Assembly (NCBI GenBank): GCA_977016875.1
Contig: CDRNST010000302.1
Coordinates: 310,001-374,000 of the forward strand
Origin: Pavona decussata
Taxonomy: Eukaryota
DNA length: 64,000 nt
Direction of reading: 5' to 3'
Shown: positions 3,865 to 60,349 of the stretch, piece after piece
Numbering within the stretch: position 1 is the stretch's first letter
Layout: each line of letters begins with the position of its first letter
Position numbers and translations under genes: made by a program
The notes under the pieces: generated by a model
Database searches by the model: none
Told to the model about the DNA's origin: nothing
The model's input: the letters and a program-made list of their open reading frames with translations, nothing else

Positions 3865-6123
3865 CTGTCAGACCCTTGCTTTCACGATTGGGAAAAGCAT
3901 CCCGGTTTCAAGCCTAACACAGTTGGTATGAATAAGTTACAGTGGATAAGCATCGATGGTTCTGTTGTTGATGAGGCCCAAGGGATGGCAAACAATTCCC
4001 ACATCTCTGATGAGGATATCGCCCTCGTGTTGCAGGGAAATTCATTAGCGGATATGTCTCGCCTTGTTTTCCGCGATCCAGATCACTTCCTAGCAGGGGA
4101 ACTCCATCGCCATGCACCACAATGGAATGCTTTATTAAATGATATGAACGATGAGCGCTTCTCTGAAGTCCGTGATTGGATTACTAACGGTGTAGACGTA
4201 ACGAAGTTCTTTAGACCGTTTAAGGGTAGTTACAAGGGAAGGAATTACGAGTGTGGTAGTCCACCGCCTTGCGTTTTTCCCAACCACCTGTCGTGCAAAC
4301 CTTTTGCCTCGTTTATTTCTGATACGCTCCTGGACCGTTTGCGTTCCGGTGCTATTTCTTTGTGGGGCAAAGTCGGAGAATGCACCCCACCCCACCTTAT
4401 TATGCCCCTCACTGTCGAGCCTAGCAAGCCGCGTCTCTGCAACGACGATAGATTTCTTAATCTGTGGATCGAAGACCGTCCGTTTGCCTTGGATAGCGTC
4501 CAACACTTGCCTAAGTATGTCAATAAAGGATTTTACCAAACAGTGTGCGACGACAAGTCAGGATATGACCACATCAAACTTCACCCCAGCAGTCGAACTT
4601 ACTTTGGCTTCCAGTGGGGAGGTTGGTATTTTGTGTGTGAATGTATTCCTTTTGGCTGGAAATCCTCGGCCTATATATATCATACGACTGGTCTAGTTGC
4701 GTCACACAGACTTCGTTCATGGAACATTCCCTCTTCTTTGTACATTGACGACCGCCATAATGGCCAACTGTCATTTCCAGGTGGCATTTTACCAGCCGCC
4801 TATCAAGCCCTCGCCTCAAGGGATGAAGTGAATTTTGCTCTGGCCGTCGCGGGTATTTTTCTCACGTGCTACATCTTAATTTCCCTCGGCTACTTTATCG
4901 GTCTGGCGAAGTCTCACCTTACCCCGAAAAAACAGGTGCCATACCTTGGTTTCGGTATCGATTCTGAACTACAGGCGTTTACTTTGTTACCCCATAAAAA
5001 AGAAAAGCTTCTTCGTCTCATCAAAGAAACGTTGGCTCGCGATAACCTGGACCTACTAACCTTGCAAAGGCTCAGCGGTAAATGCGTGTCCATGAGCTTG
5101 GCAGTTCCGGGCGCAAGGCTTTATGTTAATGAAATAAACCTAGCTGTGTCTCGCGCCACGCGTTCTGCTCGACCTGTAAAGATGTCTGCCGCTCTAAAGA
5201 ATGAAATTGAGCACTGGCTATTCCTTGAGACCTGGGACGGTTTTCTTCCCTGGCGGTCTGAGAAACACACACATGTCAGGCTGTTCTCCGACTCATCTCG
5301 CTTCGCTTGGGGAGGTGCACTGAGTCCGGGTGCCATTGAGGCGAACGTTTATGATTACTGGGACGCCTCAACAATACAAGCCGATATCGCCACTAAGGAG
5401 ACCTTAGCGCTCAATAATGTCCTTGAATCATTCGCTGATACCATCAAAAACTCGTGGGTCGACGCCTTCGTCGACAGCATGGCTCTAGTCCGTTCATGGA
5501 ATCGACAGGGCTCTCGTTCTCAATCGCTTCCTAGCGCCTTGAAGATATTATTCAACACAATGACGAAACTCAACATCGATTTGCACCTTACTTTTGTGCC
5601 TAGTTCTCAGAACCAAGCCGACTTCCCCTCGCGACGCCTTAGCCTACAGGATGCCAAATTGTGCCCATCCCTATGGACAGTAGTACAAGAGTGGAATGGC
5701 GGCGAAAATGGGCACTCTGTCGATCTAATGGCACGCCCTTCAAACGCCCAATCCGACTTGTCAGGTGCCAAGTTACCTTTCTTCTCTGAAAACCCTCTGC
5801 CGGGATCCCTGGGAGTGAACGTGTTCGCGCAATCGCCCGATCTGTACGATCCGTTTGTATTCAAGAACCCATACGCCTTTCCCCCGATCTGCCTAATACC
5901 TCATGTTATCAGGTATATGAGAAGCCTGCAATTATCCTACACTATCGTAGTACCAGACGTATGCCCAAGGCATTTTTGGTGGCCCTTGTTAACGTCTACA
6001 TGTTCTTCCCGATACCTGCTGGCCGTTGCCGGAACCGTTGGAGCGCTCCTCACTCCCTCTAAACACGGGTTTTCAAACAATTGGCCTATCCCATGGGATC
6101 TCTGGGTGTTCCGCATCGGATAA
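3865..6123 (+). CDS. pol: Reverse transcriptase - RNase H - methyltransferase-like polyprotein (first ATG 3928; frame open from acceptor at 3865)
   Basis: RT: DDKSGYDH, IPFGW, LYIDD. RNase H: LFSDSS, KETLA, FVDS, NQADFPSR. C-terminal DIRS MT-like motifs: VDLMA...NPYAFPP. Confidence 0.92.
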   Translation: MSDPCFHDWEKHPGFKPNTVGMNKLQWISIDGSVVDEAQGMANNSHISDEDIALVLQGNSLADMSRLVFRDPDHFLAGELHRHAPQWNALLNDMNDERFSEVRDWITNGVDVTKFFRPFKGSYKGRNYECGSPPPCVFPNHLSCKPFASFISDTLLDRLRSGAISLWGKVGECTPPHLIMPLTVEPSKPRLCNDDRFLNLWIEDRPFALDSVQHLPKYVNKGFYQTVCDDKSGYDHIKLHPSSRTYFGFQWGGWYFVCECIPFGWKSSAYIYHTTGLVASHRLRSWNIPSSLYIDDRHNGQLSFPGGILPAAYQALASRDEVNFALAVAGIFLTCYILISLGYFIGLAKSHLTPKKQVPYLGFGIDSELQAFTLLPHKKEKLLRLIKETLARDNLDLLTLQRLSGKCVSMSLAVPGARLYVNEINLAVSRATRSARPVKMSAALKNEIEHWLFLETWDGFLPWRSEKHTHVRLFSDSSRFAWGGALSPGAIEANVYDYWDASTIQADIATKETLALNNVLESFADTIKNSWVDAFVDSMALVRSWNRQGSRSQSLPSALKILFNTMTKLNIDLHLTFVPSSQNQADFPSRRLSLQDAKLCPSLWTVVQEWNGGENGHSVDLMARPSNAQSDLSGAKLPFFSENPLPGSLGVNVFAQSPDLYDPFVFKNPYAFPPICLIPHVIRYMRSLQLSYTIVVPDVCPRHFWWPLLTSTCSSRYLLAVAGTVGALLTPSKHGFSNNWPIPWDLWVFRIG

Positions 6124-6367
6124 GCAAGTAGTAGCTCTTGGTTAGCGCACGAGCCAAACAAAGAACACTTAGCTATCTTTAAATTTGCCAATTCTCCCAT
6201 TAATTTAGCTCCATCCATTACTTCAGTGAAATCAATGTTGTGAATAAATCATTGTTTTCCAGTATACATCTGTTGACAGTTGTTTTATAGCTTCATTTAT
6301 ACATTTATGTCAAAACAAATCTAAAGGATAAAGAAGGAACTGTTTGTTTTACTTTCATATCCTTTAG

Positions 6368-7702
6368 GACTTACCTCCAGCCGTTCGAGCGTTTGTACCA
6401 GCCGTGTCATGTCCTTCGTGCAGCCACCCCAACGACAAGCTGTTCTTTTTCTGCCAAATGTGCGGCTACAGGAGGAAAACAGTCTCCCCAAGTGTCCCGA
6501 GCCCTAAACTCTCAGTCGACCTTCAAGCGATAGATAACCGTTTGGAACTCCTAAATAATGCCTCTCTTCAATCGTCATACTCAAAACAGAAGTGCTCACT
6601 TCGTACGGAGTTTGAAACTTTCTTGGCGTCCCTTCCGAATAGTAAAACCATCCTTTCGGCAAGCCCCACTGACATCTCTCGGTTCTTGGTCTGGAAAGAC
6701 CGACATGGCAAAACCATAGTACATAGTAATGGGTGTCCCGATTCCCACCTTCAAAACGCAGCTAAGTGTAAATGTCCTAAACGCCTGGCATTCAAGACAA
6801 TCGACTCCTACATTGGAAAACTGCGAGCCATTTTTAAGGAAACCGGGCGCTGTGGAGAGTGGAACTCCCTGCTAGGTCTGGGTAACCCCGCCGCTTCACT
6901 CGAGGTGCAAAAATATCTTAAGGCGTCAACTGAGGAACAATTACGAGCCCGCATCACGCCAAAGCAAGCAGTTCCCCTATTTTTGTCCAAATTGTTGCTT
7001 CTGGCCCGTTTTTTAAATCGGAAAATTGCGGAGCGCTCGGTTAGTCCTTCTGGTCTGTTTGTATTGACGCGGGACCAAGCGTTTTTCAAAACGTTATTCT
7101 TTAGCGGTGATCGTGGTTCAGATCTTGGCATGGTGAAAACAGAAGAGATCCTGCGTTTCCCCCAGGACAATGGGCTGTTGTTCAACCACGTATGGGGAAA
7201 AACCCTGAGGGATGGCGTCTCTAACGTCTTCGGGATTCGGAGACACCCTAACCCTGAGTTGTGTCCAGTTAAAGCTATTGAGACATATGTAGCCGTGGCT
7301 TCCGAGTTACGCGTTTCTGTGACAAATGGTTACTTGTTTCGACCAACTAATCCCCAAGGTCATATTGTGAACAAACCATTTTCAAGTTCTTCAGCAGAAG
7401 CTCGTTTAAAGCTGTATTTGAAAGAAGCTAAGATCGATGAGGGAGAAACGCTACACAGCTTCCGTTCGGGCTCAGCCATAACGTTAGCGTTATCTGGCTC
7501 CCAGTTGGCGGACATAATGTCTCATGTAGGATGGAATAACAAAGAAACTGCTCTCTACTACATGAAACTAGCGGAGGTGCTTCGTTTGGATAGTCCCTCT
7601 CATTTGCTATCCGCGGACTCTTCCGCGACAGCCGCCCTAACAGAGAACTACATGGAGCTTAACCGTCTAAAAAACTTTATATCCGCTTTTCCGCACGTTT
7701 AA
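6368..7702 (+). CDS. Tyrosine recombinase with N-terminal Zn-finger-like motifs (no ATG at the 5' end; frame opens at a splice acceptor)
   Basis: Catalytic set R (GDRGSDL), K (GKTLRDG), HxxR (LHSFRSG), H (SHVGW), Y (ALYYM); CPSC...CQMC and HxxxC...CKCP at the N-terminus. Confidence 0.92.
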   Translation, partial: DLPPAVRAFVPAVSCPSCSHPNDKLFFFCQMCGYRRKTVSPSVPSPKLSVDLQAIDNRLELLNNASLQSSYSKQKCSLRTEFETFLASLPNSKTILSASPTDISRFLVWKDRHGKTIVHSNGCPDSHLQNAAKCKCPKRLAFKTIDSYIGKLRAIFKETGRCGEWNSLLGLGNPAASLEVQKYLKASTEEQLRARITPKQAVPLFLSKLLLLARFLNRKIAERSVSPSGLFVLTRDQAFFKTLFFSGDRGSDLGMVKTEEILRFPQDNGLLFNHVWGKTLRDGVSNVFGIRRHPNPELCPVKAIETYVAVASELRVSVTNGYLFRPTNPQGHIVNKPFSSSSAEARLKLYLKEAKIDEGETLHSFRSGSAITLALSGSQLADIMSHVGWNNKETALYYMKLAEVLRLDSPSHLLSADSSATAALTENYMELNRLKNFISAFPHV

Positions 7703-10164: not shown

Positions 10165-13100
10165 CTAAATTAGTATTTTCAATGTTTTATTGACCTTGCT
10201 AACATCAGAAAGGTAATCAGCACCAGAACGATCGATACTGTTCAGAATCATAACCAAATTAGTCAGGGAGGAGTTTACTGTGAGGGCCTGGGAAAGGGAT
10301 TTTGCACCGGTATTACCAATACTGTTCCTACTCAAATCCAAATTAGTCAGGGAGGAATTAACTGTAAGGGCCTGGGAAAGGAATTCAGCACCGGTATCAC
10401 CAATACTGTTGTGAAGTAAATTCAAATTAGTCAGGGAGAAGTTTACTGCGAGGGCCTGGGAAAGGGATTCTGCACCAGTATCACCAATACTGTTGTGACT
10501 CAAATTCAAATTAGTCAGGGAGGAGTTTACTGCGAGGGCCTGGGAAAGGGATTCTGCGCCGGTATCACCAATACTGTTGAAACTCAAATCCAAAATAGTC
10601 AGGAAGTAATTTACTGTGAGGGCCCGGGAAAGGAATTCAGCACCGATATCACCAAAACTGTTCCTACTCAAATTCAAATTAGTCAGGGAAGAGTTTACTG
10701 TGAGGGCCTGAGAAAGGAATTCAGCACCGATATCACCAAAACTGTTCCCAATCAAATACAAATTAGTCAGGGAGGAGTTTACTGTGAGGGCCTGGGAACC
10801 GGTTTCGCCAATACTGTTGTAACTCAAAACCAATTTAGTCAGGGAGGAGTTTACTGTGAGGGCCTGGGAAAGGGATGCAGCACCGGTTTCGCCAATACTG
10901 TTGTAACTCAAATTCAAATTAATCAGGGAGGAATTTACTGTGAGGGCCTGGGAAAGGAATGCAGCACCGGTATCACCAATACTGTTCCTACTCAAATCCA
11001 AATTAATCAGGGAGGAATTTACTGTGAGGGCCCGGGAAAGGAATTCAGCACCGGTATCACCAATACTGTTCCTACTCAAATCCAAATTAGTCAGGGAGGA
11101 GTTTACTGTGAGGGCCTGGGAAAGGGGTGCAGCACCGGTTTCGCCAATACTGTTGTCACTCAAAACCAAATTAGTCAGGGAGGAGTTTACTGTGAGGGCC
11201 TGGGAAAGGGATGCAGCACCGGTTTCGCCAATACTGTTCCAAATCAAAACTAAATTAATCAGGGATAAATTTACTGTGAGGGCCTGGGAAAGGAATGCAG
11301 CACCGGTATCACCAATACTGTTGTCACTCAAATTCAAATTAATCAGGGAGGAATTTACTGTGAGGGCCCGGGAAAGGAATTCAGCACCGATATCACCAAA
11401 ACTGTTCCTACACAAATCCAAATTAGTCAGGGAAGAGTTTACTTTGAGGGCCTGAGAAAGGAATTCAGCACCGGTGTCACCAATACTGTTCCCAATCAAA
11501 TACAAATCAGTCAGGGAGGAGTTTACTGTGAGGGCCTGGGAAAGGAATTCAGCACCGGTATCATCAATACTGTTCCAACTCAAATCCAAATTAGTCAGGG
11601 AGGAGTTTACTGTGAGGGCCTGGGAAAGAGATGCAGCACCGGTTTCACCAATATCGTTCATACTCAAAACCAAATTATTTAGGGAGGAGTTTACTGTGAG
11701 GGCAAGAGAAAGGGATGCAGCACCGGTATCACCAATACTGTTCCTACTGGAATCCAAATGCGTTAGGGAGGAGTTTGCTCCCACAACTTCATACAATAGC
11801 TCTTTTAGTTCGAAATGTTCCGTTACTAAATTTTTGATGCTAAGGTTCCTACCTAATGAATCAACCAAACGGGACTTGAGGCTTTCTTGATAGTTTGCGC
11901 ACTGTGATATATAGTATAAGGCGAATTGCAGATATGACCTAACCTTACCAGATTCAAAACAAAACAAATTAACTGATGAAGCTACCCTACTTACAAAACA
12001 AACGGCTTTTTCTTCACACTGGGAGGCTGTAATTCCAGTCATGAACAGGAACACTTCTTTTAGTTCATCCAAATATTGTTGATCAGTCACTAAGTAATGA
12101 ATATCTTCGTCGTTAATCTCAAACGCGAGATAAAAGCTGGAAAAGAACTCCTGAAAGCTCTTGTGAAAAAAACCACAACGAAAGGAAGGTTTCCTCCTAC
12201 TAGTACCTGCCTGGATTGACAAAAATCCAAACTTGATCAAAAGACTGAAAATGGCGTCACCAGATTCGTTTTCTTCGAAATCTGATTCCCCTTTACGAAG
12301 AGCTTGAAAGGCCATACGTCCCAGATATATAAGTTCTTTTTTGTAAACTGATATAAGATCTTCGTTGTTGCTTGACAATCCGTTCTTTCTTTCGTATCTT
12401 CTCAAAACAAACAGGACAATTTCAATGTATAATTGAGTTCGATTCTCGGGAAGTATGCCATTGAAATCTTCAAAAAGAATACAGAGTAAAGCTGTATTGA
12501 GAGGGTTTACTGTCAGTTGCTTTAAGTCATTTGTCCGAGGATGATTTCGAACACGAACAGGTTCAAATGGCGAAGGCCAAAGCTCCTTAAGAAGCTTTTC
12601 TGCCAACTGTTTCTTGCCTATTTTCCGGAAGTACTTTAGAATGAAACTTCGTGCATCCCTTTCGGCAAACCCGACAATCTCCAACAGTCTGTCACAGTAT
12701 CGCCTTACCTTCTTTCCAGCTTCATGACGAGATGTAAGAACAATGTGACAATTTGCAAACTCTTTACTTTTAAGAAGGTTTTCAATCATTTCTAGTTTAC
12801 TGGCATCCATTTCATCTACTCCGTCGAGTACTAACAGAACGTTAAGCTGATTTTCGCTGATAAATTGAAAGAAAGCCTCTTTAGCCTCTTTGTTTACATC
12901 GCCAGGGAGAATTTGATCATCAATAGCTTCCTTGATGCTAGATGATTTGATATCACGGCATCTTAAAAGCAACAGCACATCAGTCTCGGGGAAAGACTCG
13001 TCCCATTCATCTTGTTTAGTTGCCCAGTCATAAGCCAGCTTTTGACAGTAGGTCGTCTTTCCCATGCCAGGATCGCCCTCGATCAGCACAGTCCGTGGCG

Positions 13101-16100
13101 TTTGGCAATCTTCGTGAGCTTTGAAGATAGCTGTCATGTTGGTGATTTCATCAGTCAATTTTCCTTGTGTCTTTTCTTTGCCAACGATCTTTAGCCTTGT
13201 GAAAATGTCGTTCAGATGAAAGCTTAAGTCTTCACACCAGGGAACTGGCAAAAGCCTTTCTTCACAGGTTTTGTTAAGCTGACGGATACTCTTTATAATA
13301 TAACTTGGATATGACGCATCTAAGGAAATAAAGCATACAAGAATTAAGTTTTAATGCACAGGAGGTTATGTCATATATATTTAATGTCCCTGCCAATTGT
13401 TGGTCACCAAGAATCCCTGTTCTTCCTATGGCGACTATAGTAGCGAGTATCTGCAACCCTGTATGTTGCTGTACTCAGAATTATTTATAAAGTTAAAGTC
13501 GGTAAAAATTTGACCACTTGAAGGTATGGGTTGTGGAAAAACTCCAAGTCATTAGGGGAATGTACATGTGTTGTGATCCGTATCAGTCGTAGCTGATACA
13601 GTCTAGACACAATCTAACGTGCCCACTTTCTTTGCCTCTATAGCATTGGCGACTGCCATAAAAGTCTACAACTAATGAACTACAGGTAAGACAAGAAGGT
13701 GTGTCAAATCATACCTTCATAGTGTGGCCACGTACGGAAAACACAAGAATCACTCAGAATGTGCGTTACAACAGAAGCTGCCATCACACTAGCAAAAGGA
13801 CTCCAACTCTCTGTTGTTGACTCGGCACCATCTGCATAATCAGCTATTGCTTTGACAATGAGCCACTCAATCTGATCATCAAATGCTGCCATAAAAACGC
13901 CTGCAATACAAAATTAATTTTTACAATGCAGATAAGTGGAAAACTTCATAAGAAGAAAGATCAGTTACTTTAATGAATTCCGTATGCCGATTGATACGGC
14001 CTTGGCAACGTGGAAAATGATGAGAGAAACACTGGATGTAACGCAGACATGATTACTGGTACTCGCAGCAACATAACTGATCTAATAAACAGGTTGAACA
14101 GCCTGTGCAAGTTTGGACACAACGACATGAAAGGACAGCGTTCCTCTCATGACTATCCATGACTTTTAAAAATGGATCTATAACCAGGTGGATTCATCAT
14201 GGTTTCTGTGATTAAAAATATGTAGAAACGGATACAAAATCAAATGTTCTAAAAACGCAACGTTTTCGCCAAAACTTCAGCCTTTATCAGAGGAATGCGA
14301 AAAGAATTTACAAATCTCGCGAAGATGGAAAAGAGAAAATGTAATTTTTTTGAAATAATTAAGTTTTATCCTCTAACGTTAGATTTAAATATTCATGTAG
14401 CAGGTGCATGCCATCGTCTCGATTGTTTGGATTCTTGCAGATAGTAATTTGCCATGCCTCTAAAAGGCATCTGTTGCGCCAATTTGCACTTTTGCGTAGG
14501 ATCTTTAAAGATTCCAAAGAGATGGAGTGACCTAAACGTAGACAATGTTTAGCTAATGCAGACTTGGGGATCTTTCAAGATTCTAAAAAAAAAAAGCTTT
14601 GGCCAGTTTTTAAGACAGGAGAAGATTGGCGTTAGATTTAAATATTCATGTAGCAAGTGCATGCCATCGTCTCGATTGATTGGATTCTTGCAGATATTAA
14701 TTTTCCATGCCTCTAAAAGGCATCTGTTGCGCCAATTTGCATTTTTGCGTAGGATCTTGAAAGATGCCCAAGAGATGGAGTGACCTAAACGTAGACAATG
14801 TTTAGCTAATGCAGACTTTAGGATCTTTCAAGATTCTAAAAAAAAGCTTTGGCCAGTTTTTAAGACAGGAGAAGATTAGTGATTTGTGACAGGAAAAGTA
14901 ATATTTGTAAGTAATACGAAGGTTAAAGACGAAATTGGCCTTGGGTTATATGATATATGGACTTTCAAAAAACCATAGACAGCTTCTGGGGATAAAATAC
15001 AACCGTTTTCTAATAGATCAATCATGAGAAAGAGTTTTCCATCCGATTTCCAAACACCGAGAACTGGGCTGAAAAAAAGAGGTGCAGCCGGGTTTTTTAA
15101 ATCAACTTCGAGGTGTTTGAAAATCAGATGAAACATTCTTCAGAGTGTTTTATTAAGCTTCTCAAACCTTTAATATATCGTGGAGCAATTCAAGGAAAAA
15201 TGCACCAAATTTTATGATAATTTAGATCACTTTTTCAAACCTCCTTTACGGTAGTTATTTCCCTTTTTTTCCTTTTTCTCTTAATGAATTATTAATGAGT
15301 TTAAGAATTGGTGTTATTTTATATTCACGGCTCGACTCGTTTTAGTTACCTCATGCTAGAAAATAAGGCACCGAGGCTAAAAACGCACCTTCTCCTTCCC
15401 TTTCAATAGCAATTGCTTGAGGATGGGACTCAGCAACTTCCTTACGACGCGATTCAGCGCTGACCAGTTCTGGACCACTCAAAAACTCTCCATCACAATA
15501 GACATTGGGTTCGTGAGGTTGGGGATTTTTCAGAGGAGCCTTGAAACCATCAGCTGAATGCTTGATGACGTAAAGAAACCGTCTACTCACATAGCTTCGC
15601 ATACCAGATGAAAGTTCTTTTAATTTTGCAGAAACAACAACGTCGCCGAGCTTGGCTTTCTCGGGGTTGAGACTACTGCAGGTTCCCACTGAAATGACGG
15701 CCTTTGGTCGAAGCACAGGTACTGCATTCTTCATAGTAATCAAAGCACCACTAGGACCACTAGATCCCTCATTCGATCGTATTAATGCTACTTTCACTTT
15801 GTCTCTGTCCCCTGTGTTCTCAAAATACACGTAGCCAATGTTGTCATACCAACATCTAAAGGGATTGATCAGCTGCCTGTAACAAGCCAAGAACTCACAA
15901 TCTTTAACTGTCAGCAAGAGAAAATCAACAGGAAGAGGAGCCTCATCTGGTCTCTTTGTTGTTGTTTCAACATCTTGCATGGATGGCAGGCGTTCATTCA
16001 ATTGAGGTGGGTCAACTTCAAGGTGAGCTGTATTTGCCCTGTCACAATCGCTGCTTGCAGCTCTTGACTCGTCATCGCTGCTCGCAGCTCTTGACTCACC

Positions 16101-18735
16101 ATCGCTGCTTCCAGCTCTTGACTCACCATCGCTGCTTCCAGCTCTTGACGTCCTTCTGAGCGAGATGTTACCAAACAAACCGCTGCAAAAGATTATAACA
16201 CATTTCGTTAACGTAAAAGAACACAATTAACGTAGTGGCCATTTTTAGTTAATAAGTGGCAATAAGTGGCAATTGAACGTTCGAATAGCAGGCTGGGTAA
16301 CATAAGTCCCATGGCACGGGTGCTCAGCGGCCAGTTGTCGATAGACAAACAGATTTATTTCCGGGGTCCCCTCGTGTCCTTTTTGTCAAGACCGTCAAGG
16401 GACCATTGTTTCCATCGACCAATCAAAATTACTAAAGGACATGTTTTCTAAATTTAAAGGGCGCTCCATTCAACCTAAATTTCTGTGGTGCCAGTAAAAC
16501 NNNNNNNNNNNNNNNNNNNNNNNNNNNNNNNNNNNNNNNNNNNNNNNNNNNNNNNNNNNNNNNNNNNNNNNNNNNNNNNNNNNNNNNNNNNNNNNNNNNN
16601 NNNNNNNNNNNNNNNNNNNNNNNNNNNNNNNNNNNNNNNNNNNNNNNNNNNNNNNNNNNNNNNNNNNNNNNNNNNNNNNNNNNNNNNNNNNNNNNNNNNN
16701 NNNNNNNNNNNNNNNNNNNNNNNNNNNNNNNNNGGGTAAAGCAAGGATTAAAGCCAATATAAAAAAAAAGTTAAGTCTCTAAAGCTTACTAGCTTAGGAT
16801 AGGTCATCGGTGACAACACTCGATGCAGTTCCGTATTCTAGCGGACATTGGCTCCGTGAATTGACTACCTTTTATTCTTCCAAGAAACGAAATGAGGCAA
16901 AAAATACAAGGTACGAGACAATATATTTCCTTGAACTAACAAATTCGTGAACTAGAATGTGCATGAGCTTACTATGAACAATTCCGCCGCCTTCCATGAT
17001 CGTGTCGTTTGTTGCAGTCAATCCATGTCACGCGTGACTATTATTTTCGAGAATGAAATAAACATGCGTTCGAATAAAGCTCGGCATTCGAATGGAATGT
17101 AGAACATTTCTCTGGAAATCTTTCCGAAAAAGACGCATTAACTGAGAAAAAAAGATTCAAAATACTTGAGAAACAATTGTTATTCTTGAAATACTTGTGC
17201 TGTAATATAAAGAAAAATTAATAGTTTTATACCGTCAGTAAACTAGGGAAATTTCTACGAGAACTCTGAAATCTCTTTGCCGACATCAAACCTGACATGT
17301 AAATAGGCCTTGGCAAACAGGCTTGAAATGGAAATCCGATGTCAAATAATTTTCATAAATTTAAAACATTGCTGCTGAAAAATTCATGAATTGGAAACTT
17401 TTGGCATTAGGAAAAGGATTTCAAGAAAAAAAAATTGGAGGGATGTAACTGTGCCAGAAAGCGTCCAGTCGTGTTTTGAACTTTCCATACATTATCCTGT
17501 GTTTTTTTCCCGCGAACTATTTTTAGTAGCAGTTCACGGCTGGTTCGCTTTACAGACAAATGTATGGAAAGTTCATAGTAAGTTCATACACATTCTAGTT
17601 CAAAAATTTGTTAGTTCAAGGAAATATATTGTCTCGTACTTTGTATTTTTGCCTCATTTCGTTTCTTAGAAGAATAAAAGGTAGTCAATTCACGGAACCA
17701 ATGTCCGCCAGAATACGGAACTGCATCGAGTGTTGTCACCGATGACCTATCCTAAGCTAGTATTAAGCTTTAGAGACTTAACTTTTTTATATTGGCTTTA
17801 ATCCTTATTTGACTAGCAAATGACCTGTGATGTTGAAAAAAGAAAAAGAAAAAAAAAAAAAAGGAAAAAAAAATAAAATAAAAAAATAAAAAAAATGACC
17901 CCAACCCCGACCCCGCGTTTTACTGACACCCAAATTTCTGGTACAGAATCAAATAAATGGACAACCTGGTGTTCTTTTTCCCGGAAATCTGGAAATTCCG
18001 GGAATTTTGATTTTCTACCATTTTACACAAATCCGTTGTATTCCCATAAATGTCCTTTTAATTCACCGGTTCTCCTATAAAAAGCTGTAGACGTTCTCGG
18101 AAATTGTGTGTGCTCCTGGAAATCCACTTTACAAAACATTACAGGTTTGAATGAGAATTTTACCGTGCTTCATGTTAAATTGGTCGAATTGTCATATTTC
18201 AAATAGCTTTAGCAAAATTTCCGAAAAACTAGCTCGATTTAATCAGGTTTAATTTGGTCAAGAGATGGTGCTTTAGTGACTCGCAGTTTGCTTGCATCGG
18301 TCGCCTCACTCGAGGAGAAAATTGGACGAATTTGCTTTTCAGGCGTGAACACAGGTCTGTCTGAATTAATTATATTTAAGTAAGAAAGCTTAATGTCTGA
18401 TTATCTGTGTGTCTTGATCCACTGACTTTCTTCACCACGAGATCTTATGTCAACCGTGTCTATTTATTACTTTCTCCAGTGCGTACGTGTAAACAAACCG
18501 AAATCCTCCGGCGCATACCAAATTCGCCCATATGACAACACGATCAAATTACGCTACACAATTTTGGCATTGGCAAGAGCTGTTCATTTAAACATCTGCA
18601 TTTAATACAACATTGCTTTTTTGCTACAATATTCTACAAAATAAAGCAGTAGCCACATGCAGTCATAAACAGCCTTTTATGTAAACTTGTTTCTACGTAC
18701 CTCACAAAGCTCCTGAAACGTGAAAATCGATTCAT
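10165..18735 (-). CDS. NLR-like immune receptor A: PNP_UDP/ATP-nucleosidase-like - NACHT - 19 LRR; exons 18735-18701, 16182-15389, 13900-13715, 13319-10165 (~1389 aa)
   Basis: GT-AG junctions with consistent phases (2,1,1; 4170 nt total). PNP motifs: VISVGTC, LGDVVVS, AIEREGEG|VFMAA, WLIVKAIADYADG. NACHT: Walker A GDPGMGKT, Walker B LLVLDGVDE, VLTSR, NPL, FFHKSFQEFF. 28-aa LRRs. The first coding exon lies across an assembly gap and is less certain. Confidence 0.85.
10170..11770 (-). repeat. 84-bp coding tandem repeat (19 RI-like LRR units, one with a 4-aa deletion)
   Basis: LTNLxLSxNSIGDTGAxxLSQALTVNSS repeated, with high DNA identity between units. Confidence 0.95.
14377..14877. repeat. ~250-bp tandem duplication in an NLR A intron
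   Basis: cgttagatttaaatattcatgtagca... at 14377 and 14630, near identical. Confidence 0.85.
16501..16733. other. Assembly gap
   Basis: N run. Confidence 1.
16743..17806. mobile_element. Non-autonomous DNA transposon / foldback element with ~240-bp TIRs
   Basis: 16743-16979 is the reverse complement of 17571-17806; the left end abuts the gap. Confidence 0.8.
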
Positions 18736-28524: not shown

Positions 28525-28717
28525 NNNNNNNNNNNNNNNNNNNNNNNNNNNNNNNNNNNNNNNNNNNNNNNNNNNNNNNNNNNNNNNNNNNNNNNNNNNN
28601 NNNNNNNNNNNNNNNNNNNNNNNNNNNNNNNNNNNNNNNNNNNNNNNNNNNNNNNNNNNNNNNNNNNNNNNNNNNNNNNNNNNNNNNNNNNNNNNNNNNN
28701 NNNNNNNNNNNNNNNNN
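28525..28717. other. Assembly gap
   Basis: N run. Confidence 1.
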
Positions 28718-35400: not shown

Positions 35401-36444
35401 CCCAGTGAAGGGATTGACAACTCGACAGGGTCAGGTGGCGATGATGATGAGCCTCTGACGAGTACAGTGGATGGAAATGTTGATGAAGTTGTTCAGAACT
35501 TGACACGCCAGGTAATGTCTCTTTCTGTTGCATCACCACCTGCGCAGCCTTTGGCCCCATCCAGGGCCAATGTGCCATCAACACCATCATGTCCATCGCC
35601 TCAGAGAAGGCCTCCCCACTGCAGTACCTGTGGTCATCTCAAGCAAGGCCATCAGAGACCAGTGTCACAGCGAGCAGTTGGTAAGTGCCCCGTTTGCCCT
35701 TCTCAGTCGTGCACCAGACATGGGCGTATTTTGCCTTGTCAATGTGCTTGGTGTTCAAGACAGTCACAAATAGGCATTAATCCACCCATCTCTTCTCTTC
35801 CACAGGGACCAGTTGTCAGGGAAACACAGATAAATCCAGATGTGACCGAGTGGCTGATTTCTTTTTCACAATCAACTGTAACCCCTGGGCAAATGGGTAG
35901 CAACGCATGTACCATCATTTCTGTGTATGGGGCTGTCAATTTTCTTATGCCTTCAACAAACTGGAGTCTGCCTTCTCCTCACAGTTTGCCTTTGGAATTT
36001 GTCAGCATGTTTAAACAACTTATGATTTATGGCAACCATTCCTACAATGGGATTGGTAACCCGCAAGCCACTTACAGTGCACCTGAAATTATTAATCATC
36101 CTCAACTTGGTTTTTCAGGGGTTGTGAAATGTGGGGATGAATATCAATTCAACAATTTTACTTCTTTTGCAGGTGAACTTCAACATCTTGCTGCAAGACC
36201 TCAACATTCAAAGCTTGCAGCAGTGATAATCTTACCACCTGATAAAACGATGCTCTTGCTTGTAGGTAGATGTGGTGAGTCGGTACTCATGGAAAGTCAC
36301 ATGCACGGTAATGTTGGTGCAATTATTGCTTCTGCAGGTCCTCACAAATTACATGAGATGGCTCTGTACATTGAATTCATGGCAAGAAGAGACTGGGCCT
36401 ATAATTCCACCCCATTTGACATGACTATTGTTGAGTTGTGCTGA
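32474..36444 (+). pseudogene. Damaged spliced gene for an Academ/DUF6589-like transposase fused to RING, Zn-knuckle and papain-like peptidase modules (exons ~32474-32741, 32847-32921, 33427-36444)
   Basis: Phase-1 GT-AG introns. Core motifs PADWPGQ, LGPLHVDLN, FHRKNYNK, DEYFVE. C-terminal CDKSGC..GCWHSFHLCC..CPIC, CSTCGH..H, GSNACT..ESHMH. T-run disruption at ~32520 and frame switches at ~33760-33855. Confidence 0.55.
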
Positions 36445-52093: not shown

Positions 52094-55000
52094 CTAGTAT
52101 TTTATTTTTACTGCTTTATTGACTTTGCTAACATCAGAAAAGTAAACAACACCAGAAAGACCGATAGCCCTGTTCAGTGTCAAATCCAAATTAGTCAGGG
52201 AGGAGTTTACTATGAGGGCCTGGGAAAGGGATTCAGCACCGGCATCACCAATACGGTTTCCACTCAAATTGAAATTAGCCAGGGAGGAGTTTACTATGAG
52301 GGCCTGGGAAAGGGATGCAGCACCGGTATCACCAATACTGTTGTTACTCAAATTCAAATTAGTCAGGGAGGAGTTTTTTGTAAGGGCATAAGAAAGGTTT
52401 GCAGCACCGGGATCACCAATACTGTTGTCACTCAAATCCAAATTAGTCAGGGAGGAGTTTGCAGTGAGGGCCTGGGAAAGGTATCCAGCACCGGTACCAC
52501 CAAATCTGTTGAAACTCATATTCAAATTAGTCAGGGAGGAGTTTTTTGTAATGACACGAGAAAGGGATGCAGCACCGGTATCACCAATTCTGTTGAAAGT
52601 CAAATCCAAATTAGTCAGGGAGGAGTTTACAGCGAGGGCCTGGGAAAGGGATTCGACACCGGTATCACTAATACTGTTGTAACTCAAATTCAAATTAGTC
52701 AGGGAGGAGTTTACTGTGAGGGTCTGGGAAAGGGATTCAGCACCGGTATCACCAATACGGTTCTTACTCAAATTCAAATTAGTCAGGGTGGAGTTTCCTG
52801 TAAGGGTCTGGGAGAGGGATTCGACACCGGTATCACAAATACTGTTGTGACTTAAATTCAAATTAGTCAATGAGGAGTTTACTGTGAGAGCGTGGGAAAG
52901 GGATTCAGCACCGGTATCATCAATACTATTGTAACTCAAATTCAAATTAGTCAGGGTGGAGTTTCCTGTTAGGGTCTGGGAGAGGGATTCGACACCGGTA
53001 TCACAAATACTGTTGTGACTTAAATTCAAATTAGTCAATGAGGAGTTTACTGTGAGAGCGTGGGAAAGGGATCCAGCACCGGTATCACCAATACTATTGT
53101 AACTCAAATTCAAATTAGTCAGGGTGGAGTTTCCTGCTAGGGTCTGGGAAAGGGATTCGACACCGGTATCACAAATACTGTTGTGACTTAAATTCAAATT
53201 AGTCAATGAGGAGTTTACTGTGAGAGCGTGGGAAAGGGATTCAGCACCGGGATCACCAATACTGTTGTGACTGAAATTCAAATTAGTCAGGGAGGAGATT
53301 CTTGTAAGGGCCTGGAAAAGGGATTTAGCACCGGTATCACCAACACTGTTGTGACTCAAATTCAAATTAGTCAGGGAGGAGTTAACTGTGAGGATCTGGG
53401 ATAGGGATTTATCACCGGGATCACAAATACTGTTGCAACTCAAATCCAAATCAGTCAGGGAGGAGTTTGTTCCAACAACTTCAAAGAATAACTCATCCAA
53501 ATCTAAACAGTTTGTTAATTTTAAAGTTTTGATATTAAGGTTCGTACCTAATATATCAACTAATTTAGACCTAAGGTCTTTCTGATGGATTGTTAACTGC
53601 GAAATACAGCTTAAAGCAAACTGCAGATATGAGTTAGCGTTAGATTCGTCACCAAAGACGTTTACTAATAAAGCTGCCTTACTCACAAAAGACACCGCTT
53701 TTTCTTCACTTTGGGAGGCTGCAATTCCAGTCATAAACTGGAAAACCTCTTTCAGATCACGCAAATATCGTTTATCAGTCACTAAATAATCAATATCTTC
53801 GTCGCTAATCTCAAACGCGAGATAAAGGCCGGAGAAGAACTCCTGAAAGCTCTTGTGAAAAAATCCACAACGAAGACAAGGTTTCCTCTTAGTAACACCT
53901 GGCTGGATTGTCAGAAACCCAAACTTGATTAGCAGACTGAAAATGGCGTCACCAGATTCGTTTACTTCGAAATCTAACTCTCCTTTACGAAGAGCTTGAT
54001 AGGCCATGCGTCCCAGATAAATCAGTGCTTTTTTGTAAACTGATATAAGATCTTCGCTGTTGCTTGACAATCCGTTCTTTCTTTCGTATCTTCTCAAAAC
54101 GAACAGAACAATTTCAATGTACAATTGAGTTCGATTCTTGGGAAGCCTGCCGTTGAAATCTTCATAAAGAATACAGATTAAAGTAGTATGGAGAGGGTTT
54201 GTTGTAAGTTGCGACAAGTCTCTTGATATGAAATCAGCATACCTGGATTTAGAATACCAAAGTTGCTCCATAAGCTTGTCAGCCAAGTGTTTCTTTCCTA
54301 TGTTCTTGAAGTACTTCGCTATGAAACTCTGTGCATGTCTTTTGGTAAACCCGACAATCTCCCACAGCGTGTCACAGTATCGCCTTACCTTCTTTCCAGT
54401 TTCATGACGAGATGTAAGAACAATGTGACTATTTGCAAACTCATTACTGTTAAGAAGGTTTTCAATCACTTTTAGTTTACTGGCGTCCACTTCATCTACT
54501 CCGTCGAGTACTAACAGAACTTTAAGCTGATTTTCGCTGATAAATTGAAAGAAAACCTCTTTAGCTTCTTTGTTTACATCGTAAGGGAGAATTTGATCAT
54601 CAATGGCTTCCTTAATGCTAGATGATTTGATATCACGGCATCTTAAAAGCAACAGCACATCAGTCTCGGGGAAAGACTCGTCCCATTCATCTTGTTTAGT
54701 TGCCCAGTCATAAGCCAGCTTTTGACAGTAGGTCGTCTTTCCCATGCCAGGATCGCCCTCGATCAGCACAGTCCGTGGCTTTTGGCAATCTTTGTGAGCT
54801 TTGAAGATAGCTGTCATGTTGGTGATTTCATTAGTTAATTTTCCTTGTGTCTTTTCTCTGCCAGCAATCCTTAGCCTTGTGAAAATGTTGTTCAGATGAA
54901 AGCTAAAGTCCTCACACCAAGGAATTGGCAAAAGCCATTCTTCGCGGGTTTTGTTACGCTGACGGATACTCTTTATAATGTAAGTTGGATATGACGCATC

Positions 55001-57359
55001 TAAGGAAAAAAAGGAACAAGAATGTCGTTTTAATACACCCAAGGTTATGTCATAAATATTGTCTTGCCAGTTGTTTGGTCACCAAGAATCCCTGTACTAC
55101 CTACAACGACTATACGAGTATCTGCAACCCTGTACATCGCGGTACTCAAAGATTATTTGTATAGTTTAACTCGGTAGAAATTTGACCATTCGAAGGTCTG
55201 GGTTGTTGTAAAATTCCAAGTCATTAGGGGAAAGTAATGTGATCCATATAAGTCGCAGCTGATACACGTACCCACTTTCTTTGCCTCCCTCTGATCGATT
55301 TATAATATTACGAAATCAAAAACATCTTACAAAAATTACACCACAGGTATCTCCGGACCCTTTGGATTCTCTACTGTTTCCCTAGAAAGGATTTTAGAAA
55401 CTTCTTTGGCCACTCTTTTAAGCTGCGGGAATACTTTCAACCAACACAGAGTTGCCTTAATGGCGCAGTTGGAGATTGGCCTGAACATGAATATATTTAA
55501 TAGATGATCCGAATCCTGAAGTTACAAAAATCCCTGTAGTCGTATGTTTTTATAAAGGCAACATTTTAACTCTAGATGACACCAGGAGCCGCTTAATATA
55601 AAGAAAAAGGGAAAAAATGTTTGACTGGAGACCCTTTTTTGTCATATTAATCCGCAACATAGCATTGACGACTTTAAGTAAGACTAAAAGATGTGTCATA
55701 TCATACCTTCATAGTGTGGCCACGTACGGAAAACACAAGAATCACTCAGAATGTGTGCTACAACAGAAGCTGCCATCACACTAGCAAAAGGACTCCAACT
55801 CTCTGTTGTTGACTTGGTACCATCTGCATAATCAGCTATTCCTTTCACAATGAGCCACTCAATCTGATCATCAAATGCTGCTGTAAAAACGCCTGCATTA
55901 TATACAAAGAATTTTTTAACAATGCATTTAAGTGGAAAAATTCATAAGAAGAAAGGTGGCAACATGTAAAATGATGTGAGAAACACTGGATGTAACGCAT
56001 GCATAATTACCGGTACTTGCAGCAACATCACTGTTCTAAGAAACAGGTTGAACAGCATGTACTAGTTAGAGACAGTGTTCCTCCCGTGGCTATCATTGAA
56101 TTCATAAATTTTATCAATATACTTGAGGTAACTATAGGATTTAAATAAAAGCGATAAAGGAAGCTACTTTACTCATTTAGAGAAACTTGACAATCCTTTC
56201 ACTTAAAAATCCAGAATAAAGGGAAAAAAGCATGGGCCGGTTTTTAGGAGAAGAGAAGAATATAGTGGTAGATCAAACTCCTGTTCAACAAATGTTGAAC
56301 AGTGTGTCATGCAGTGTTGAATGTTGAAATAGGCCGTTCAACATGTTGAACTTAACGTTGATGAACGTTGTTGAACGAAATAGAGAAGAGTTCTATTCCA
56401 TTCAACAAGTTGCCACTTGTTGACCGGCTCTAACCAGTCGGTGAAATTGGTGATACACGGTTCAACATCGTGCAACATTTGTTGATCAACAGAATGTTGG
56501 AAGATGTTGTACCCGTGTGACTCTTCGAGGTTTTTGGAAATTGGATAAAACATTCTTCCGAGTGTTTTATAAAGCCTCTCAAACCAAACCAAATTATGAT
56601 AATTAAGATCACTTTTCCGAATCCCTTTCACGGTAGTTATTTTTCTTTTTTACCCGTCTCTCTCTCTTAAAACTCACCTTCTCCTTCCCTTTCAATAGCA
56701 ATTGCTTGAGGATTAGATTCAGCAAGCTTCTTACGACGCGATTCAGCGCTGACCAGTTCTGGACCACTCAGAAATTCGCCATCGCAATGAACATTGGGTT
56801 CGTGAGCTTGAGCATTGTTCAGAGGAGCCTTAAAACCATCAGCTGAATGCTTGATGACGTAAAGAAACCGTCTACTCACATAACTTCGCATGCCAGTTGA
56901 CAGTTCTTTTAATTTTGCAGAAACAACAACGTCGCCAAGCTTGGCTTTCTCGGGGTTGAGACTACTGCAGGTTCCCACTGAAATGACAGCCTTTGGCCGA
57001 AGCACAGGTACAGCATTCTTGAGAGTAATCAAAGCACCACCAGGACCACCGGATCCCTCATTCGATCGTATTAAGGCCACTTTCACTTTGTTACTGGCTC
57101 CTGCGTTCTCGAAATACACGTAGCCAATGTTGTCATACCAACATCTAAAGGGATTGACCAACTGCTTGTAACAGGCCAAGAACTCACAGTCTTTAACAGT
57201 CAGCAACAGAAAATCAACAGGAAGAGGAACCTCATCGGGTTTCTTCATTGTTGTTTCAACATCTTGCATGGATGGCAGGCGTTCATTTAGTTGAGGTGGG
57301 TCAACTTCAAGGTGAGTTGTCTTTGCATTGTCACCATTGTTGCTTGGAGCCCTTGACAT
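52094..57359 (-). CDS. NLR-like immune receptor B: PNP_UDP/ATP-nucleosidase-like - NACHT - 16 LRR; exons 57359-56678, 55892-55707, 54999-52094 (~1257 aa)
   Basis: Same splice sites and phases as paralog A (186-bp middle exon in both; 3774 nt total); same PNP, Walker A/B and winged-helix motifs. Confidence 0.87.
52100..53460 (-). repeat. 84-bp coding tandem repeat (16 LRR units), including a thrice-repeated 168-bp doublet
   Basis: SHALTVNSSLTNLNLSHNSICDTGVESLSQTL(A/T)GNSTLTNLNLS occurs three times. Confidence 0.95.
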
Positions 57360-60349
57360 GCTTCTCAAAGCTAAACGAACAAAGATTTCAACAGGACAGA
57401 TTGATACATTGCTGTTCGTTCATTTACAATGATAATAACACATTCCATAAATAATGGAGGACAACTTAAGCTTAGTAACCATTTTGAGTTAATTAGTGGC
57501 AATAGAGAATGTACTATAATATGAGACCGATCCCACGGCAAATCAGCAGATAACAAGAGTCGGCGTTTTTTTTCCTGTAAGCTTGTTTCTACGTACCTCA
57601 GAAAGCTCTTGAAATGGTATCAGGTATAACTCTGTTCCTTGTACGAAATCTGTACCCGCACATGGCGTAAAACAACGTGTTAAGTAGGAAAAAAACAAAG
57701 CTAAAGCCACAATATTGTTTATCAATGAGTTCACACACACTCAGAAACAACATTCTCAACTGTGTAGCTATCAAACTCATACGCAACTCTATACTCGCAG
57801 TTTTAGTCAAAACCCAGAGTCTTTCTTGACAGTCAAATGCTTTTATTTGCAAGTTTGTTTTTCTTCAGGAACGTTGCAAACGTATTATTAAGATGACTGA
57901 TACGAGCCATTTTGGTTTTTTTCTTATAATGGTGAATTGATAGGAATAATGGCGAAGCATGTAGAGTTGTTTCTTTGAAATCAGGGCTTTACCAACTTAC
58001 ATTCTTGTAATAGATGTTCAGTTCTCTCAAGCATCATCCAGAATGTGTTGAATCAAAGAGAATTCACGCCTTCAAGGTAAATGAAGGAAGGAAGAAAAGG
58101 AAAATTAGGAGTGAAAGCCTGGTATTGGAAACCTTCTCATATTTCTCACTTTATAGGAAGTCAGTAACTTAGGTTGAACCAACACACCAGTTTTATTCCA
58201 GGAATAAAAATCACCACTCGTGATTTAGTGCATTATCAATCAGCAAGAATGTTCTCGGGAATGTTACTTTTTAAAGCAAAGCGTTCCTAAACTTTTTGTA
58301 ACATTTCCATTGAATTTGTTGTATAGGCCAACTAATACCTCCACTCCAAGAATAGGTATCTCTTTGAATTAGCTGAAGAATTATTAATTAAATAATGAGT
58401 TAAAATCATTATAGAATTAAGCCTTGTCTACCGAGAAAAAAAAGCCATATTGGAAGATCTTTTGAGTGAAAAAAAAATCTGGCTGTAGTCTTTTTGGAAC
58501 CATCCAAAAACCACCTATGCATAAACGCAAAAGCGAGACAAGGCGAAAAGTTACTGTTAAAGGCCATCAAATTTGATAGAAACTCGAGATAAGCACTTCG
58601 ACGTTCTTAAAGACTTTTTTAGTCTTGACAAGCTTTAACGTAGTAATTGAAATGTAAATATTGTCATTTACTTAGACAATATGGGTACTTACTCCATTTT
58701 GTTCTTGCTAGCTTGGCATGGCTACATGGTCAGCCATTGAAGTAACTTGGAGTTCAACAAATCTCTGCTTTATTTCAGCACAGGATCATGAAGTCTATAA
58801 AACATTTTATTAATGTGTATGAGGATCATTGATTAACAATGTAGCTGACAGAGAAAAATTTACGTCCAGATTTAATTCCTTTCAAGCGCTGTTCCGAATC
58901 ATGCAAGGGAGTGTTTTCCTTTAAACGAACATAAAGCTAAGTGCTCGCTAAACAATGGCAATAAAATGTGATCTAATCAACAAAATTTTATTCCAGCTTG
59001 TTGCTAGAAAATAACTGCTAAGAAGAGCCAGTGGAGTGTTATTGAAATGTAATGTGTTCTTTAATTGCTCTTGGTATAAAAACATTCATCAAAACAAGTA
59101 TTTTGGTCTTCCTGGATTTAAATGCGAGACGTATATCAACCTATTCTATCAACAGATTTAAATGTGTTTTTACTGTTACTAACTGAGTTTTGCCAATTTT
59201 ATTTCTCTTTCTCACTGGGATAAAAAAAAAAGGTAAAAAAAATCAGTAAACAATAAAGCAACCCACGTCACTTATTTTGCTATACACTTAGTGATACTGC
59301 AGCGCGTCATAAGACATGACCTACCTACTTGCAATTTCCCAGGAATGTACTCCAGAATCTAGAATCTGCTGGAGGCGCCAAGTGTTTCGCCCTTCAAAAT
59401 AAAGAAAAAAATGATCTAAATGAAACAAATAGTAACTCAAAAAGGTAAGGTTTGTGATTGTGATACTTAAGCAAAAGTTGCTATAAACGTTAGATAAGAA
59501 GTCACCAAGTGTTTATTTAAAGTAAGCAGAGGTTCAAAGTTGGTACAAAATAACGTACATACAAAGAATTACAGGAAGAGAGAAATTTATTACTGAATCG
59601 TAGTACATGGTCAGAAAGTCTGTGCATGGGCTTTACTGTCGATGTTTACTTCTTTAACTTGAAAAATAAGAATAGAACAAGCTTTGACTGAAGAATGTTT
59701 GTTTTGTGGCTGGAGGCTACATGTTTTCTTGTTCTCCTCACTCCCGAGTACAATGTGCGTGATTTCTACTTCAGAGCATCTGGGCAATTGAATGGTTAAT
59801 TTTCTAGATCTGCTTTTTGTGAAAAGCCCTTGATCCCCGATTCAAAACTTGGAAGCCAAAATGTTTATTTTATCTTTGCTGGATCCACAAGAATGGTCAT
59901 GTTGTTAAAGATTCCCCGACACTTGTGTTCTATTTAGAACACAATGACATGGTTGCAGGTTCCATTGTGGCCAAATTAGTGAAGACAAAAACGTGTACAT
60001 AATCTAGTGAAGCATATAAACCTTAGGAAACACTTCCAGAGTAGGGCTCAGTCACATTTTTTTCCCGGGATCAGAAGCCTTGCTTTGGTGGTAAAAATGC
60101 GACTGCTAAAAAAAGGCAGATGTTTCGTGCCTAGTTTTCATAATTCAAGCACCTGGAATAGTAATGTAGAAAAAAAAGGGAAGGCGCGTAGGATGAAAAA
60201 TTTGAATATTCATTTGAATGGAAGTTGTTTTGTTGATAATAGCCGGCGTGGATTTTGTTTTACTGTGCGACATTAAATTTCCGCGTCATTGCATCCTTCA
60301 ACTTTCGGCAAAACATTCAGTGGCCAACATTGTAGGTTATTTCGTTAAC

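Follow-up and report, generated by a model that had tools for sequence, protein, structure and literature searches.

The 64,000-nucleotide (nt) window analysed here, from the stony coral Pavona decussata (assembly GCA_977016875.1, contig CDRNST010000302.1, positions 310,001 to 374,000), contains on its minus strand a gene, referred to as gene A, that encodes a receptor of the NLR family in which a NACHT ATPase is followed by 19 tandem leucine-rich repeat (LRR) units. We conclude that this array is probably the ligand-sensing LRR solenoid of a stony-coral NLR, in which recombination homogenises the units and selection diversifies their exposed codons, and that it would act as a generator of specificities in the germline. 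The original prediction for this DNA had described a highly homogenised, single-exon LRR array with hypervariable ligand-face codons, and had proposed it as a candidate receptor-diversification system. The observation on the array is confirmed, and the interpretation is supported as far as the sequence alone goes. Taken as a whole, the property is well supported, extends across the coral NLR family and can be tested; it is not a new principle.

Gene A is one open frame at 10165-13251 on the minus strand (1028 codons from the first start codon, 1061 codons open) that runs from upstream of the NACHT domain down to a stop codon at 10165-10167. The NACHT domain (Pfam PF05729, E = 2.9e-25, amino acids 53-210, about 12622-13095) carries a Walker A motif, GMGKTT, and a Walker B-like motif, LLVLDGVDE, in the translation, and Pfam LRR_6 matches the same frame with E = 1e-58. 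With a P-loop and Walker B in its NACHT domain and C-terminal LRRs in one frame, gene A is a metazoan NACHT-LRR receptor. The NACHT module and a helical linker (11767..13319) are in a common exon with the LRR array (10183..11766), and the claim that the array is single-exon was borne out by the uninterrupted frame that holds both. The array was located by Tandem Repeats Finder, Pfam LRR_6, the unit table and an AlphaFold model, and consists of 19 in-frame units of 28 amino acids on the minus strand, the number originally counted. Units 1-18, beginning with unit 1 at 11683-11766 (84 nt), are canonical and have the register LxxLxLxxN with 28 amino acids each in the minus-strand translation; unit 12 (10771-10842) has only 72 nt, being short by 12 nt in frame (4 amino acids), and unit 19 (10183-10266), the C-terminal cap, has diverged to an identity of about 62% with the other units. 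According to the open reading frame (ORF) listing and the translation, the gene ends with a C-terminal tail, LKILI, and the stop codon (10165..10182). Three plus-strand ORFs in the array (10495-11253, 10940-11455 and 11474-11890) were set aside as antisense readings of the 84-nt unit, that is, by-products of the repeat.

Unit homogeneity and codon variation in the gene A array

Tandem Repeats Finder reports a single array in gene A at 10235-11776, with a period of 84, 18.5 copies and 86% matches. The mean pairwise DNA identity among units 1-18 is 86.5% (range 77-97%), and the synonymous divergence (dS) among them is 0.17. Compared with their consensus, the gene A units have an identity of 0.92 in nucleotides and 0.84 in amino acids, and those of the paralogs 0.76-0.87 in amino acids. 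The LRR units of L023, a conventional NLR in the same genome, are 50% identical in DNA. The earlier description of the gene A units as ‘nearly identical’ therefore holds in the sense that their DNA identity is far above that of a conventional array, but the wording is somewhat overstated.

The residues that had been listed for the variable positions are exact. Among units 1-18, position 5 is D in seven units, V in four, Y in two and N in five, and position 7 is S in thirteen, I in three, and C and L in one each. Position 8 is R in six units, W, G, D, Y and H in two each, and M and F in one each, with L in unit 19. The recurring motifs were also found as reported, LYLIGN in units 4 and 13 and NSFGDIG in units 5, 13 and 14.

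These positions carry an excess of nonsynonymous change. The ratio of nonsynonymous to synonymous divergence (dN/dS) among the 18 gene A units, calculated by the Nei-Gojobori method, is 5.1 at positions 2, 3, 5, 7 and 8 versus 0.48 elsewhere. For a count test on near-identical units, we used a minimum-spanning forest of units from 14 genes differing by at most 6 nt, in which the nonsynonymous and synonymous changes number 121 and 6 at the same five positions versus 215 and 77 elsewhere (Fisher P = 4e-8). For the individual positions, omega was calculated on a spanning tree joining all 184 units of the gene A type in 12 genes, as the nonsynonymous rate scaled by the pooled synonymous rate. The strongest site is unit position 8, the codon just before the conserved Asn (omega 3.8, P = 8e-28), followed by position 7 (2.0, P = 1e-5), position 10 (1.95, P = 1e-5), positions 14 and 24 (1.9 and P = 1e-4 for each), position 17 (1.7, P = 7e-4), and positions 5 and 3 (about 1.5, P = 7e-3 and 1e-2, respectively). 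The scaffold positions 1, 4, 6, 9, 11, 23 and 26, which are occupied by L, N or I, are not elevated (omega 0-0.45). The nonsynonymous excess at the x positions of the motif, on which the diversification reading depends, is thus present, with the largest values at positions 8 and 7. Read conservatively, these codon comparisons make positive selection firm at position 8 and probable at positions 7 and 10, with relaxed or weakly diversifying evolution at the other exposed residues.

The AlphaFold model of the gene A LRR domain (mean predicted local distance difference test score, pLDDT, 91.6) contains about 20 strand-helix turns. In every unit, positions 3-5 form the strand and positions 12-25 the helix, and positions 7, 8 and 10 are in the loop after the beta-strand. 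The best Foldseek matches to this model are ribonuclease inhibitor-ligand complexes (E about 1e-24; template modelling (TM) score up to 0.81 by target); NLRP LRR domains come next. The 28-amino-acid period and the modelled strand-helix horseshoe place the gene A LRRs in the ribonuclease-inhibitor type. How exposed each position is was judged from the DSSP pattern together with what is generally known of the ribonuclease inhibitor fold, and positions 8, 7, 10, 5 and 3, on the strand and the following loop, are on what we take to be the concave face and rim. The variable sites had been predicted to lie on the concave face; this would apply to these five positions, on the face or its rim, but not to positions 14, 17 and 24, which are on the helix.

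Recombination within and between arrays

Unit 13 is a mosaic: its 5’ part resembles unit 4 and its middle part units 5 and 14. It differs from unit 4 at 5 of 84 nt, and three of the five differences (nt 31, 39 and 41) are within nt 23-59, a tract without any difference between unit 13 and units 5 and 14. In the 5’ 30 nt, by comparison, there is a single difference from unit 4 (nt 7), and the codons for Y, I and G are common to both units. In the four-gamete test on the gene A units, 26 of 78 informative site pairs show all four gametes, and at least six recombination or recurrent-mutation events (Rm) are counted within the 84-nt unit alignment.

Young duplicates provide the clearest test, and they show the turnover of whole units as well as the contrast between the two parts of the gene. 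L010 and L011, tandem duplicates on contig C85, are 99.6% identical. Their NACHT parts differ by 5 synonymous changes and 1 nonsynonymous change, whereas their LRR parts differ by 0 synonymous and 7 nonsynonymous changes (Fisher P about 0.005), five of which are at unit positions 7, 7, 8, 14 and 24. In addition, indels of precisely 168 nt and 84 nt, which correspond to whole units, separate the two arrays. The genes with the gene A unit type have from 9 to 28 units.

In a search of the 602-Mb stony-coral assembly, the gene A NACHT part has at least 90 matches, and the eight closest copies are on contigs C302 and C319. The gene A unit type (84 nt, 86-97% identity) occurs in about 17 genes, and the units of this type that the genome search recovered fall at the NLR gene clusters on C302, C319 and C85. 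Between gene A and L008, L010 and L011, dS is 0.94-1.01 in the NACHT part and 0.16-0.19 in the LRR units, with DNA identities of 72-73% in NACHT and 84-85% in the array. L007 and L009 on C3 serve as a contrast pair because they carry a different unit type; their dS from gene A is about 1.3 in the NACHT part and 1.0-1.2 in the LRR units, and the DNA identity of L007 is 71.8% in NACHT and 64-66% in the array. These array identities between paralogs hold in any register. Units from the two NACHT clades come as close to each other as 3 differences in 84 nt, and gene A and L010 have different C-terminal caps. The internal units therefore have a much more recent common ancestry than the domains flanking them, which needs recombination between paralogs. 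Unit shuffling or conversion had been suggested from the recurring motifs, and the mosaic unit 13, the four-gamete pairs, the whole-unit indels and the units common to NACHT backbones at dS of about 1 all bear it out.

The best named homologs of gene A are from Porites, Montipora, Acropora and Pocillopora. Public NLRs with the same pattern are found in Porites harrisoni, P. lobata, Montipora foliosa, Acropora millepora and Pocillopora verrucosa. In each the unit flavour is distinct, and the units of these proteins are nearly always closest to units of their own protein. Such clustering by protein is a classic signature of concerted evolution, which on this comparison is family-wide rather than locus-specific. 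The most variable positions in the public coral NLRs are 8, 7, 5, 10 and 13. No allele of gene A was found in the protein collection, where the next best match is 77% identical. Among the best database hits, which were examined for alleles or orthologs, P0002 and P0004 were rejected as alleles because they match this genome at only 78-80% in the NACHT part.

Proposed mechanism, alternatives and known systems

We propose that gene A encodes a receptor in which a nucleosidase head of the PNP_UDP type precedes the NACHT ATPase and the 19 ribonuclease-inhibitor-type LRRs. The 84-nt units would be kept alike by recent amplification together with unequal crossing-over or slippage and short-tract conversion, acting both inside one array and between the arrays of paralogous genes, and the same recombination would add, delete and reshuffle units. 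Selection for amino-acid change would drive the exposed codons apart, position 8 foremost, then positions 7, 10, 5 and 3, plus some helix positions. With a uniform scaffold and diverging exposed codons, each gene copy would present a different binding surface. This variable surface may bind ligands, and ligand binding would relieve autoinhibition so that NACHT oligomerises and the PNP-type head then acts, possibly by ATP cleavage. The targets could be microbes, symbionts or non-self tissue, and the receptor may thus serve in allorecognition or in the recognition of pathogens or symbionts. In vitro, ATP is cleaved by related PNP domains of eukaryotes, and the coral PNP-NLRs have been placed in that clade (bioRxiv 10.1101/2023.01.24.525353).

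Several points weigh against this proposal. The spanning tree used for the per-position values does not amount to a phylogeny, and its assumptions do not hold under conversion. The whole-unit omega is about 1 (0.87, 1.03 and 1.12 in three computations), so relaxed constraint at exposed sites could account for a large share of the variation outside position 8, and helix positions 14, 17 and 24 are likewise elevated, meaning that the variation is not confined to the concave face. No identical units are common to both NACHT clades, and one old domain swap, or a few, could explain the LRR/NACHT mismatch without any continuing exchange. The contigs of the public runs are all 400 nt or shorter and none spans the array; unit order and number thus come from the assemblies, which are probably those of one individual. 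The contigs of the RNA run are only 95-96% like the gene A NACHT part and therefore probably derive from relatives, not from the gene A copy. Finally, we know of no ligand or phenotype for any coral NLR of the gene A type.

Some of these points would also suit a young tandem amplification that is drifting, in which a recent duplication and relaxed constraint on exposed residues produced the pattern with neither adaptive diversification nor continuing exchange. A whole-unit omega of about 1 and several elevated helix positions agree with such drift, and the within-array dS (0.17) is similar to the dS between close paralogs, which fits one amplification burst. We nevertheless consider this explanation unlikely. 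It does not account for the omega of 3.8 at position 8 (P = 8e-28) and of about 2 at positions 7 and 10, for the 121 nonsynonymous versus 6 synonymous changes at the x positions, or for L010 and L011, where 7 nonsynonymous and 0 synonymous LRR changes stand against 1 and 5 in NACHT (P about 0.005). The same positions are variable in five coral genera, and the mosaic units and the LRR/NACHT dS mismatch require recombination. It is also improbable, and more so than drift, that the solenoid serves mainly for autoinhibition or scaffolding and that its variable surface comes from co-evolution with host partners or paralog-specific regulators instead of foreign ligands. A host-partner interface is not expected to differ at nearly every unit and paralog or to tolerate 9 to 28 units, and no other candidate sensor domain was found in gene A with Pfam, although NLRP LRR domains whose role is in oocyte lattice complexes and not in pathogen sensing are also among the structure matches, and a study of zebrafish NLR-B30.2 genes judged the LRRs not to be the recognition module (PMC4852459).

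The array, or its unit order and number, could in principle be an assembly artefact from collapsed or mis-joined near-identical repeats of several paralogs, since 84-nt units at 86-97% identity in about 17 genes are hard for assemblers and the array is spanned by neither a read nor a contig. We regard this as very improbable. The frame is open through all 19 gene A units, as it is in 14 paralogs, and three samples yielded exact contigs of 135-152 nt located inside the gene A array and across its 5’ edge. An identical gene A protein is encoded on contigs of three lengths (389,004 nt, 235,176 nt and 1,787,327 nt), and L026, on the 235,176-nt record, is 100% identical to the window over 9087 nt, though L026 is probably from the same individual and hence not independent support.

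A broader reading can be offered tentatively, with clearly less confidence than the one for gene A itself. Scleractinians may possess a convergent animal counterpart of the fungal NLRs with high internal conservation (HIC), in which near-identical units would be continually gained, lost, converted and traded among clustered NLR genes and selection would diversify the codon before the Asn and its neighbours; the same recombination, in mitosis, could also give somatic variants between branches of very long-lived clonal colonies. To our knowledge, adaptive immunity is absent from corals, and their NLR genes number in the hundreds. If the arrays are specificity generators, the question of how pathogens are recognised, symbionts chosen and foreign tissue rejected would become directly testable, and the variable codons would point to the likely binding surface. 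The 84-nt unit plan would then make it simple to genotype array alleles by long reads across colonies, reefs, and disease or bleaching outcomes. In that case, a uniform repeat scaffold with a few hypervariable codons and shuffling would also have arisen independently in animals and fungi, with a different repeat fold.

The fungal HIC NLRs (the Podospora HNWD genes het-e, het-d and het-r with WD40 repeats, and equivalents with ANK or TPR repeats; PMC1805685, PMC4986451, PMC12222747, PMC13449251) also have a STAND NTPase followed by near-identical tandem repeats. In both systems a few surface codons are positively selected, the repeat number varies, and repeats are exchanged within and between paralogous loci, and a PNP_UDP head is common among fungal NLRs too. 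On the other hand, LRRs are lacking in the fungal receptors (PMC4986451), whereas the repeat here is an LRR and the host an animal. The coral units are slightly less uniform, with an amino acid identity to consensus of 0.84 versus the fungal threshold of 0.85, although the latter is a T-REKS similarity of at least 0.85 (PMC4986451) and our figures are identities to consensus. Allelic hypervariability and a recognition phenotype have been demonstrated in the fungi, whereas the coral case is known from the sequence of paralogs. The parallel to the fungal receptors drawn in the original prediction is thus sound for the evolutionary mode, with the repeat fold and the kingdom being different.

Plant NLRs combine an NB-ARC domain with 24-residue LRRs that have low internal DNA conservation and hypervariable xxLxLxx positions. 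As in the coral array, solvent-exposed residues of the strand motif are under positive selection, and unequal crossing-over and exchange occur between clustered paralogs. The coral array differs in that its units are of the 28-residue ribonuclease-inhibitor type, 86% identical, and located behind a NACHT domain. For the plant NLR LRRs, Noel et al. 1999 is cited in PMC13449251. The zebrafish NLR-B30.2 genes (PMC4852459) are likewise a large, clustered family of animal NLRs, and gene conversion there differs between the NACHT and C-terminal modules and leads to mismatched synonymous divergence. The variable selected module in zebrafish is B30.2, however, and the LRRs are not particularly variable, whereas here the LRR array carries the signal. 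The variable lymphocyte receptors (VLRs) of lampreys and hagfish are assembled somatically from cassettes into an incomplete germline gene, and their variable residues line the concave face. They resemble the coral array in that recognition diversity arises by combining LRR modules. We rejected VLR-like somatic cassette assembly for gene A because its germline frame is complete from NACHT to the stop codon; units of the gene A type are found at NLR clusters.

By its predicted domain plan and its host group, gene A would belong to the coral PNP_UDP-NACHT-LRR group, a plan known since 2013 (Hamada et al., as cited in PMC4986451). In their accessible parts, the reports on this group (Hamada et al. 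2013, through PMC4986451; Rousset et al. 2023, preprint 10.1101/2023.01.24.525353) deal with domain combinations and the head, and not with array homogeneity, unit turnover or codon selection. According to a 2026 survey, which gives no details, animals have HIC NLRs too, LRRs included (PMC13449251, section 12). A search outside the subscription journals turned up no paper with such an analysis of coral LRR arrays; the coral genome papers that it covered treat NLR copy number and domain combinations, not the arrays.

Upstream exons, other unit types and further features of the window

Two probable exons upstream of the NACHT-LRR exon would supply the PNP_UDP-like head of gene A. The exon at 15387..16226 on the minus strand, with a GT donor near 15387-15388, probably encodes the main part of the head. 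It is 58% identical over 225 amino acids (E = 1e-84) to residues 20-241 of P0094, a Porites harrisoni PNP_UDP-NACHT-LRR protein, and its match to Pfam PNP_UDP_1 is weak (E = 6e-4, below the cut-off). A small probable exon at 13704..13892 (-), whose boundaries are approximate, would encode the C-terminal part of the domain and is 80% identical over 20 amino acids to residues 240-259 of a P. harrisoni PNP-NACHT-LRR protein. The two exons are colinear with residues 20-259 of the annotated P. harrisoni PNP_UDP-NACHT-LRR protein. The PNP-like and NACHT-LRR exons were compared one at a time, each as a separate query. A probable splice acceptor AG of the NACHT-LRR exon is located at 13320-13321 (-), and the GT donor and this AG fit the predicted joining of the head to NACHT-LRR. 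No spliced RNA joining the PNP-like exons to NACHT-LRR was seen among the contigs of the public runs.

A run of N at 16501-16733, a short way upstream of the PNP-like exon, hides the start of gene A; the second run of N in the window is at 28525-28717. At the start of the frame holding the PNP-like exon, a 27-nt repeat present four times (16042-16149, minus strand) encodes SRAGSSDGE four times, and it is absent from paralog B (described below). The putative intron contains a non-coding tandem repeat of 253 nt x 2 at 14377-14877. At 15060-15310, also in the putative intron, contigs of all four runs pile up with a very high summed depth, many joints and loose ends, which suggests a dispersed repeat.

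The window contains a second gene with the gene A unit type, paralog B (52094..55042, minus strand), in which the ORF and Pfam show a NACHT domain and 16 LRR units. Its array, at about 52115-53458, has a period of 84 and 15.3 copies by Tandem Repeats Finder, and its NACHT part is 77% identical in amino acids to that of gene A, with a dS of 0.27. A PNP_UDP-like exon of paralog B is at 56667..57368 (-), where the match to Pfam PNP_UDP_1 is weak (E = 1.4e-4).

At least four further homogenised unit types are present in other NLR subfamilies of the genome. One comprises the units of the C3 genes, and another, on C109 and C397, alternates between 28 and 30 residues. A third is a cysteine-rich type of 28 residues in L016, L020, L021 and L022 (contigs C204, C132, C403 and C82), which are short NLRs having 4-9 units at 87-91% DNA identity. 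A fourth, of 31 residues (93 nt), is found in L014 (C64:2633400-2641600) and L024 (C162:707200-715400), with 11-13 copies at 82-87% identity and variable residues grouped in one loop. L023, L015 and L025 are NLRs with ordinary diverged LRRs or without a detectable repeat array. At C397:35000-49000 (L018 and L019) there is an NLR frame of 3495 codons with a P-loop near the start and then about 104 LRR units, which Tandem Repeats Finder resolves as a period of 84 with 104 copies or a period of 174 with 52 copies at 87% matches. This array is either an extreme expansion or an assembly problem.

About 2.5 kb beyond the 3’ end of gene A, two long ORFs at 3928-7702 on the plus strand together resemble a DIRS/Crypton-like mobile element; a reverse transcriptase is weakly matched by one of them, and the other has an ALOG domain and a tyrosine recombinase (Phage_integrase). 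Between the two NLR genes of the window, at 33661-36444 (+), an ORF of 927 codons has a cysteine-rich middle and is Ser/Pro-rich further on, and it has no Pfam match at E ≤ 0.01. A 207-codon ORF at 47446-48069 (+) matches Helicase_C, the C-terminal helicase domain, and probably represents a single exon or a piece of a helicase gene. Non-coding tandem repeats are present at 1934-2462 (69 nt x 7.7) and 25954-26995 (216 nt x 5). Two 41-nt arrays, at 48112-48207 and 49578-49675, are about 1.4 kb apart, and their consensus units are seemingly reverse complements of each other; the pair may represent the ends of an element.

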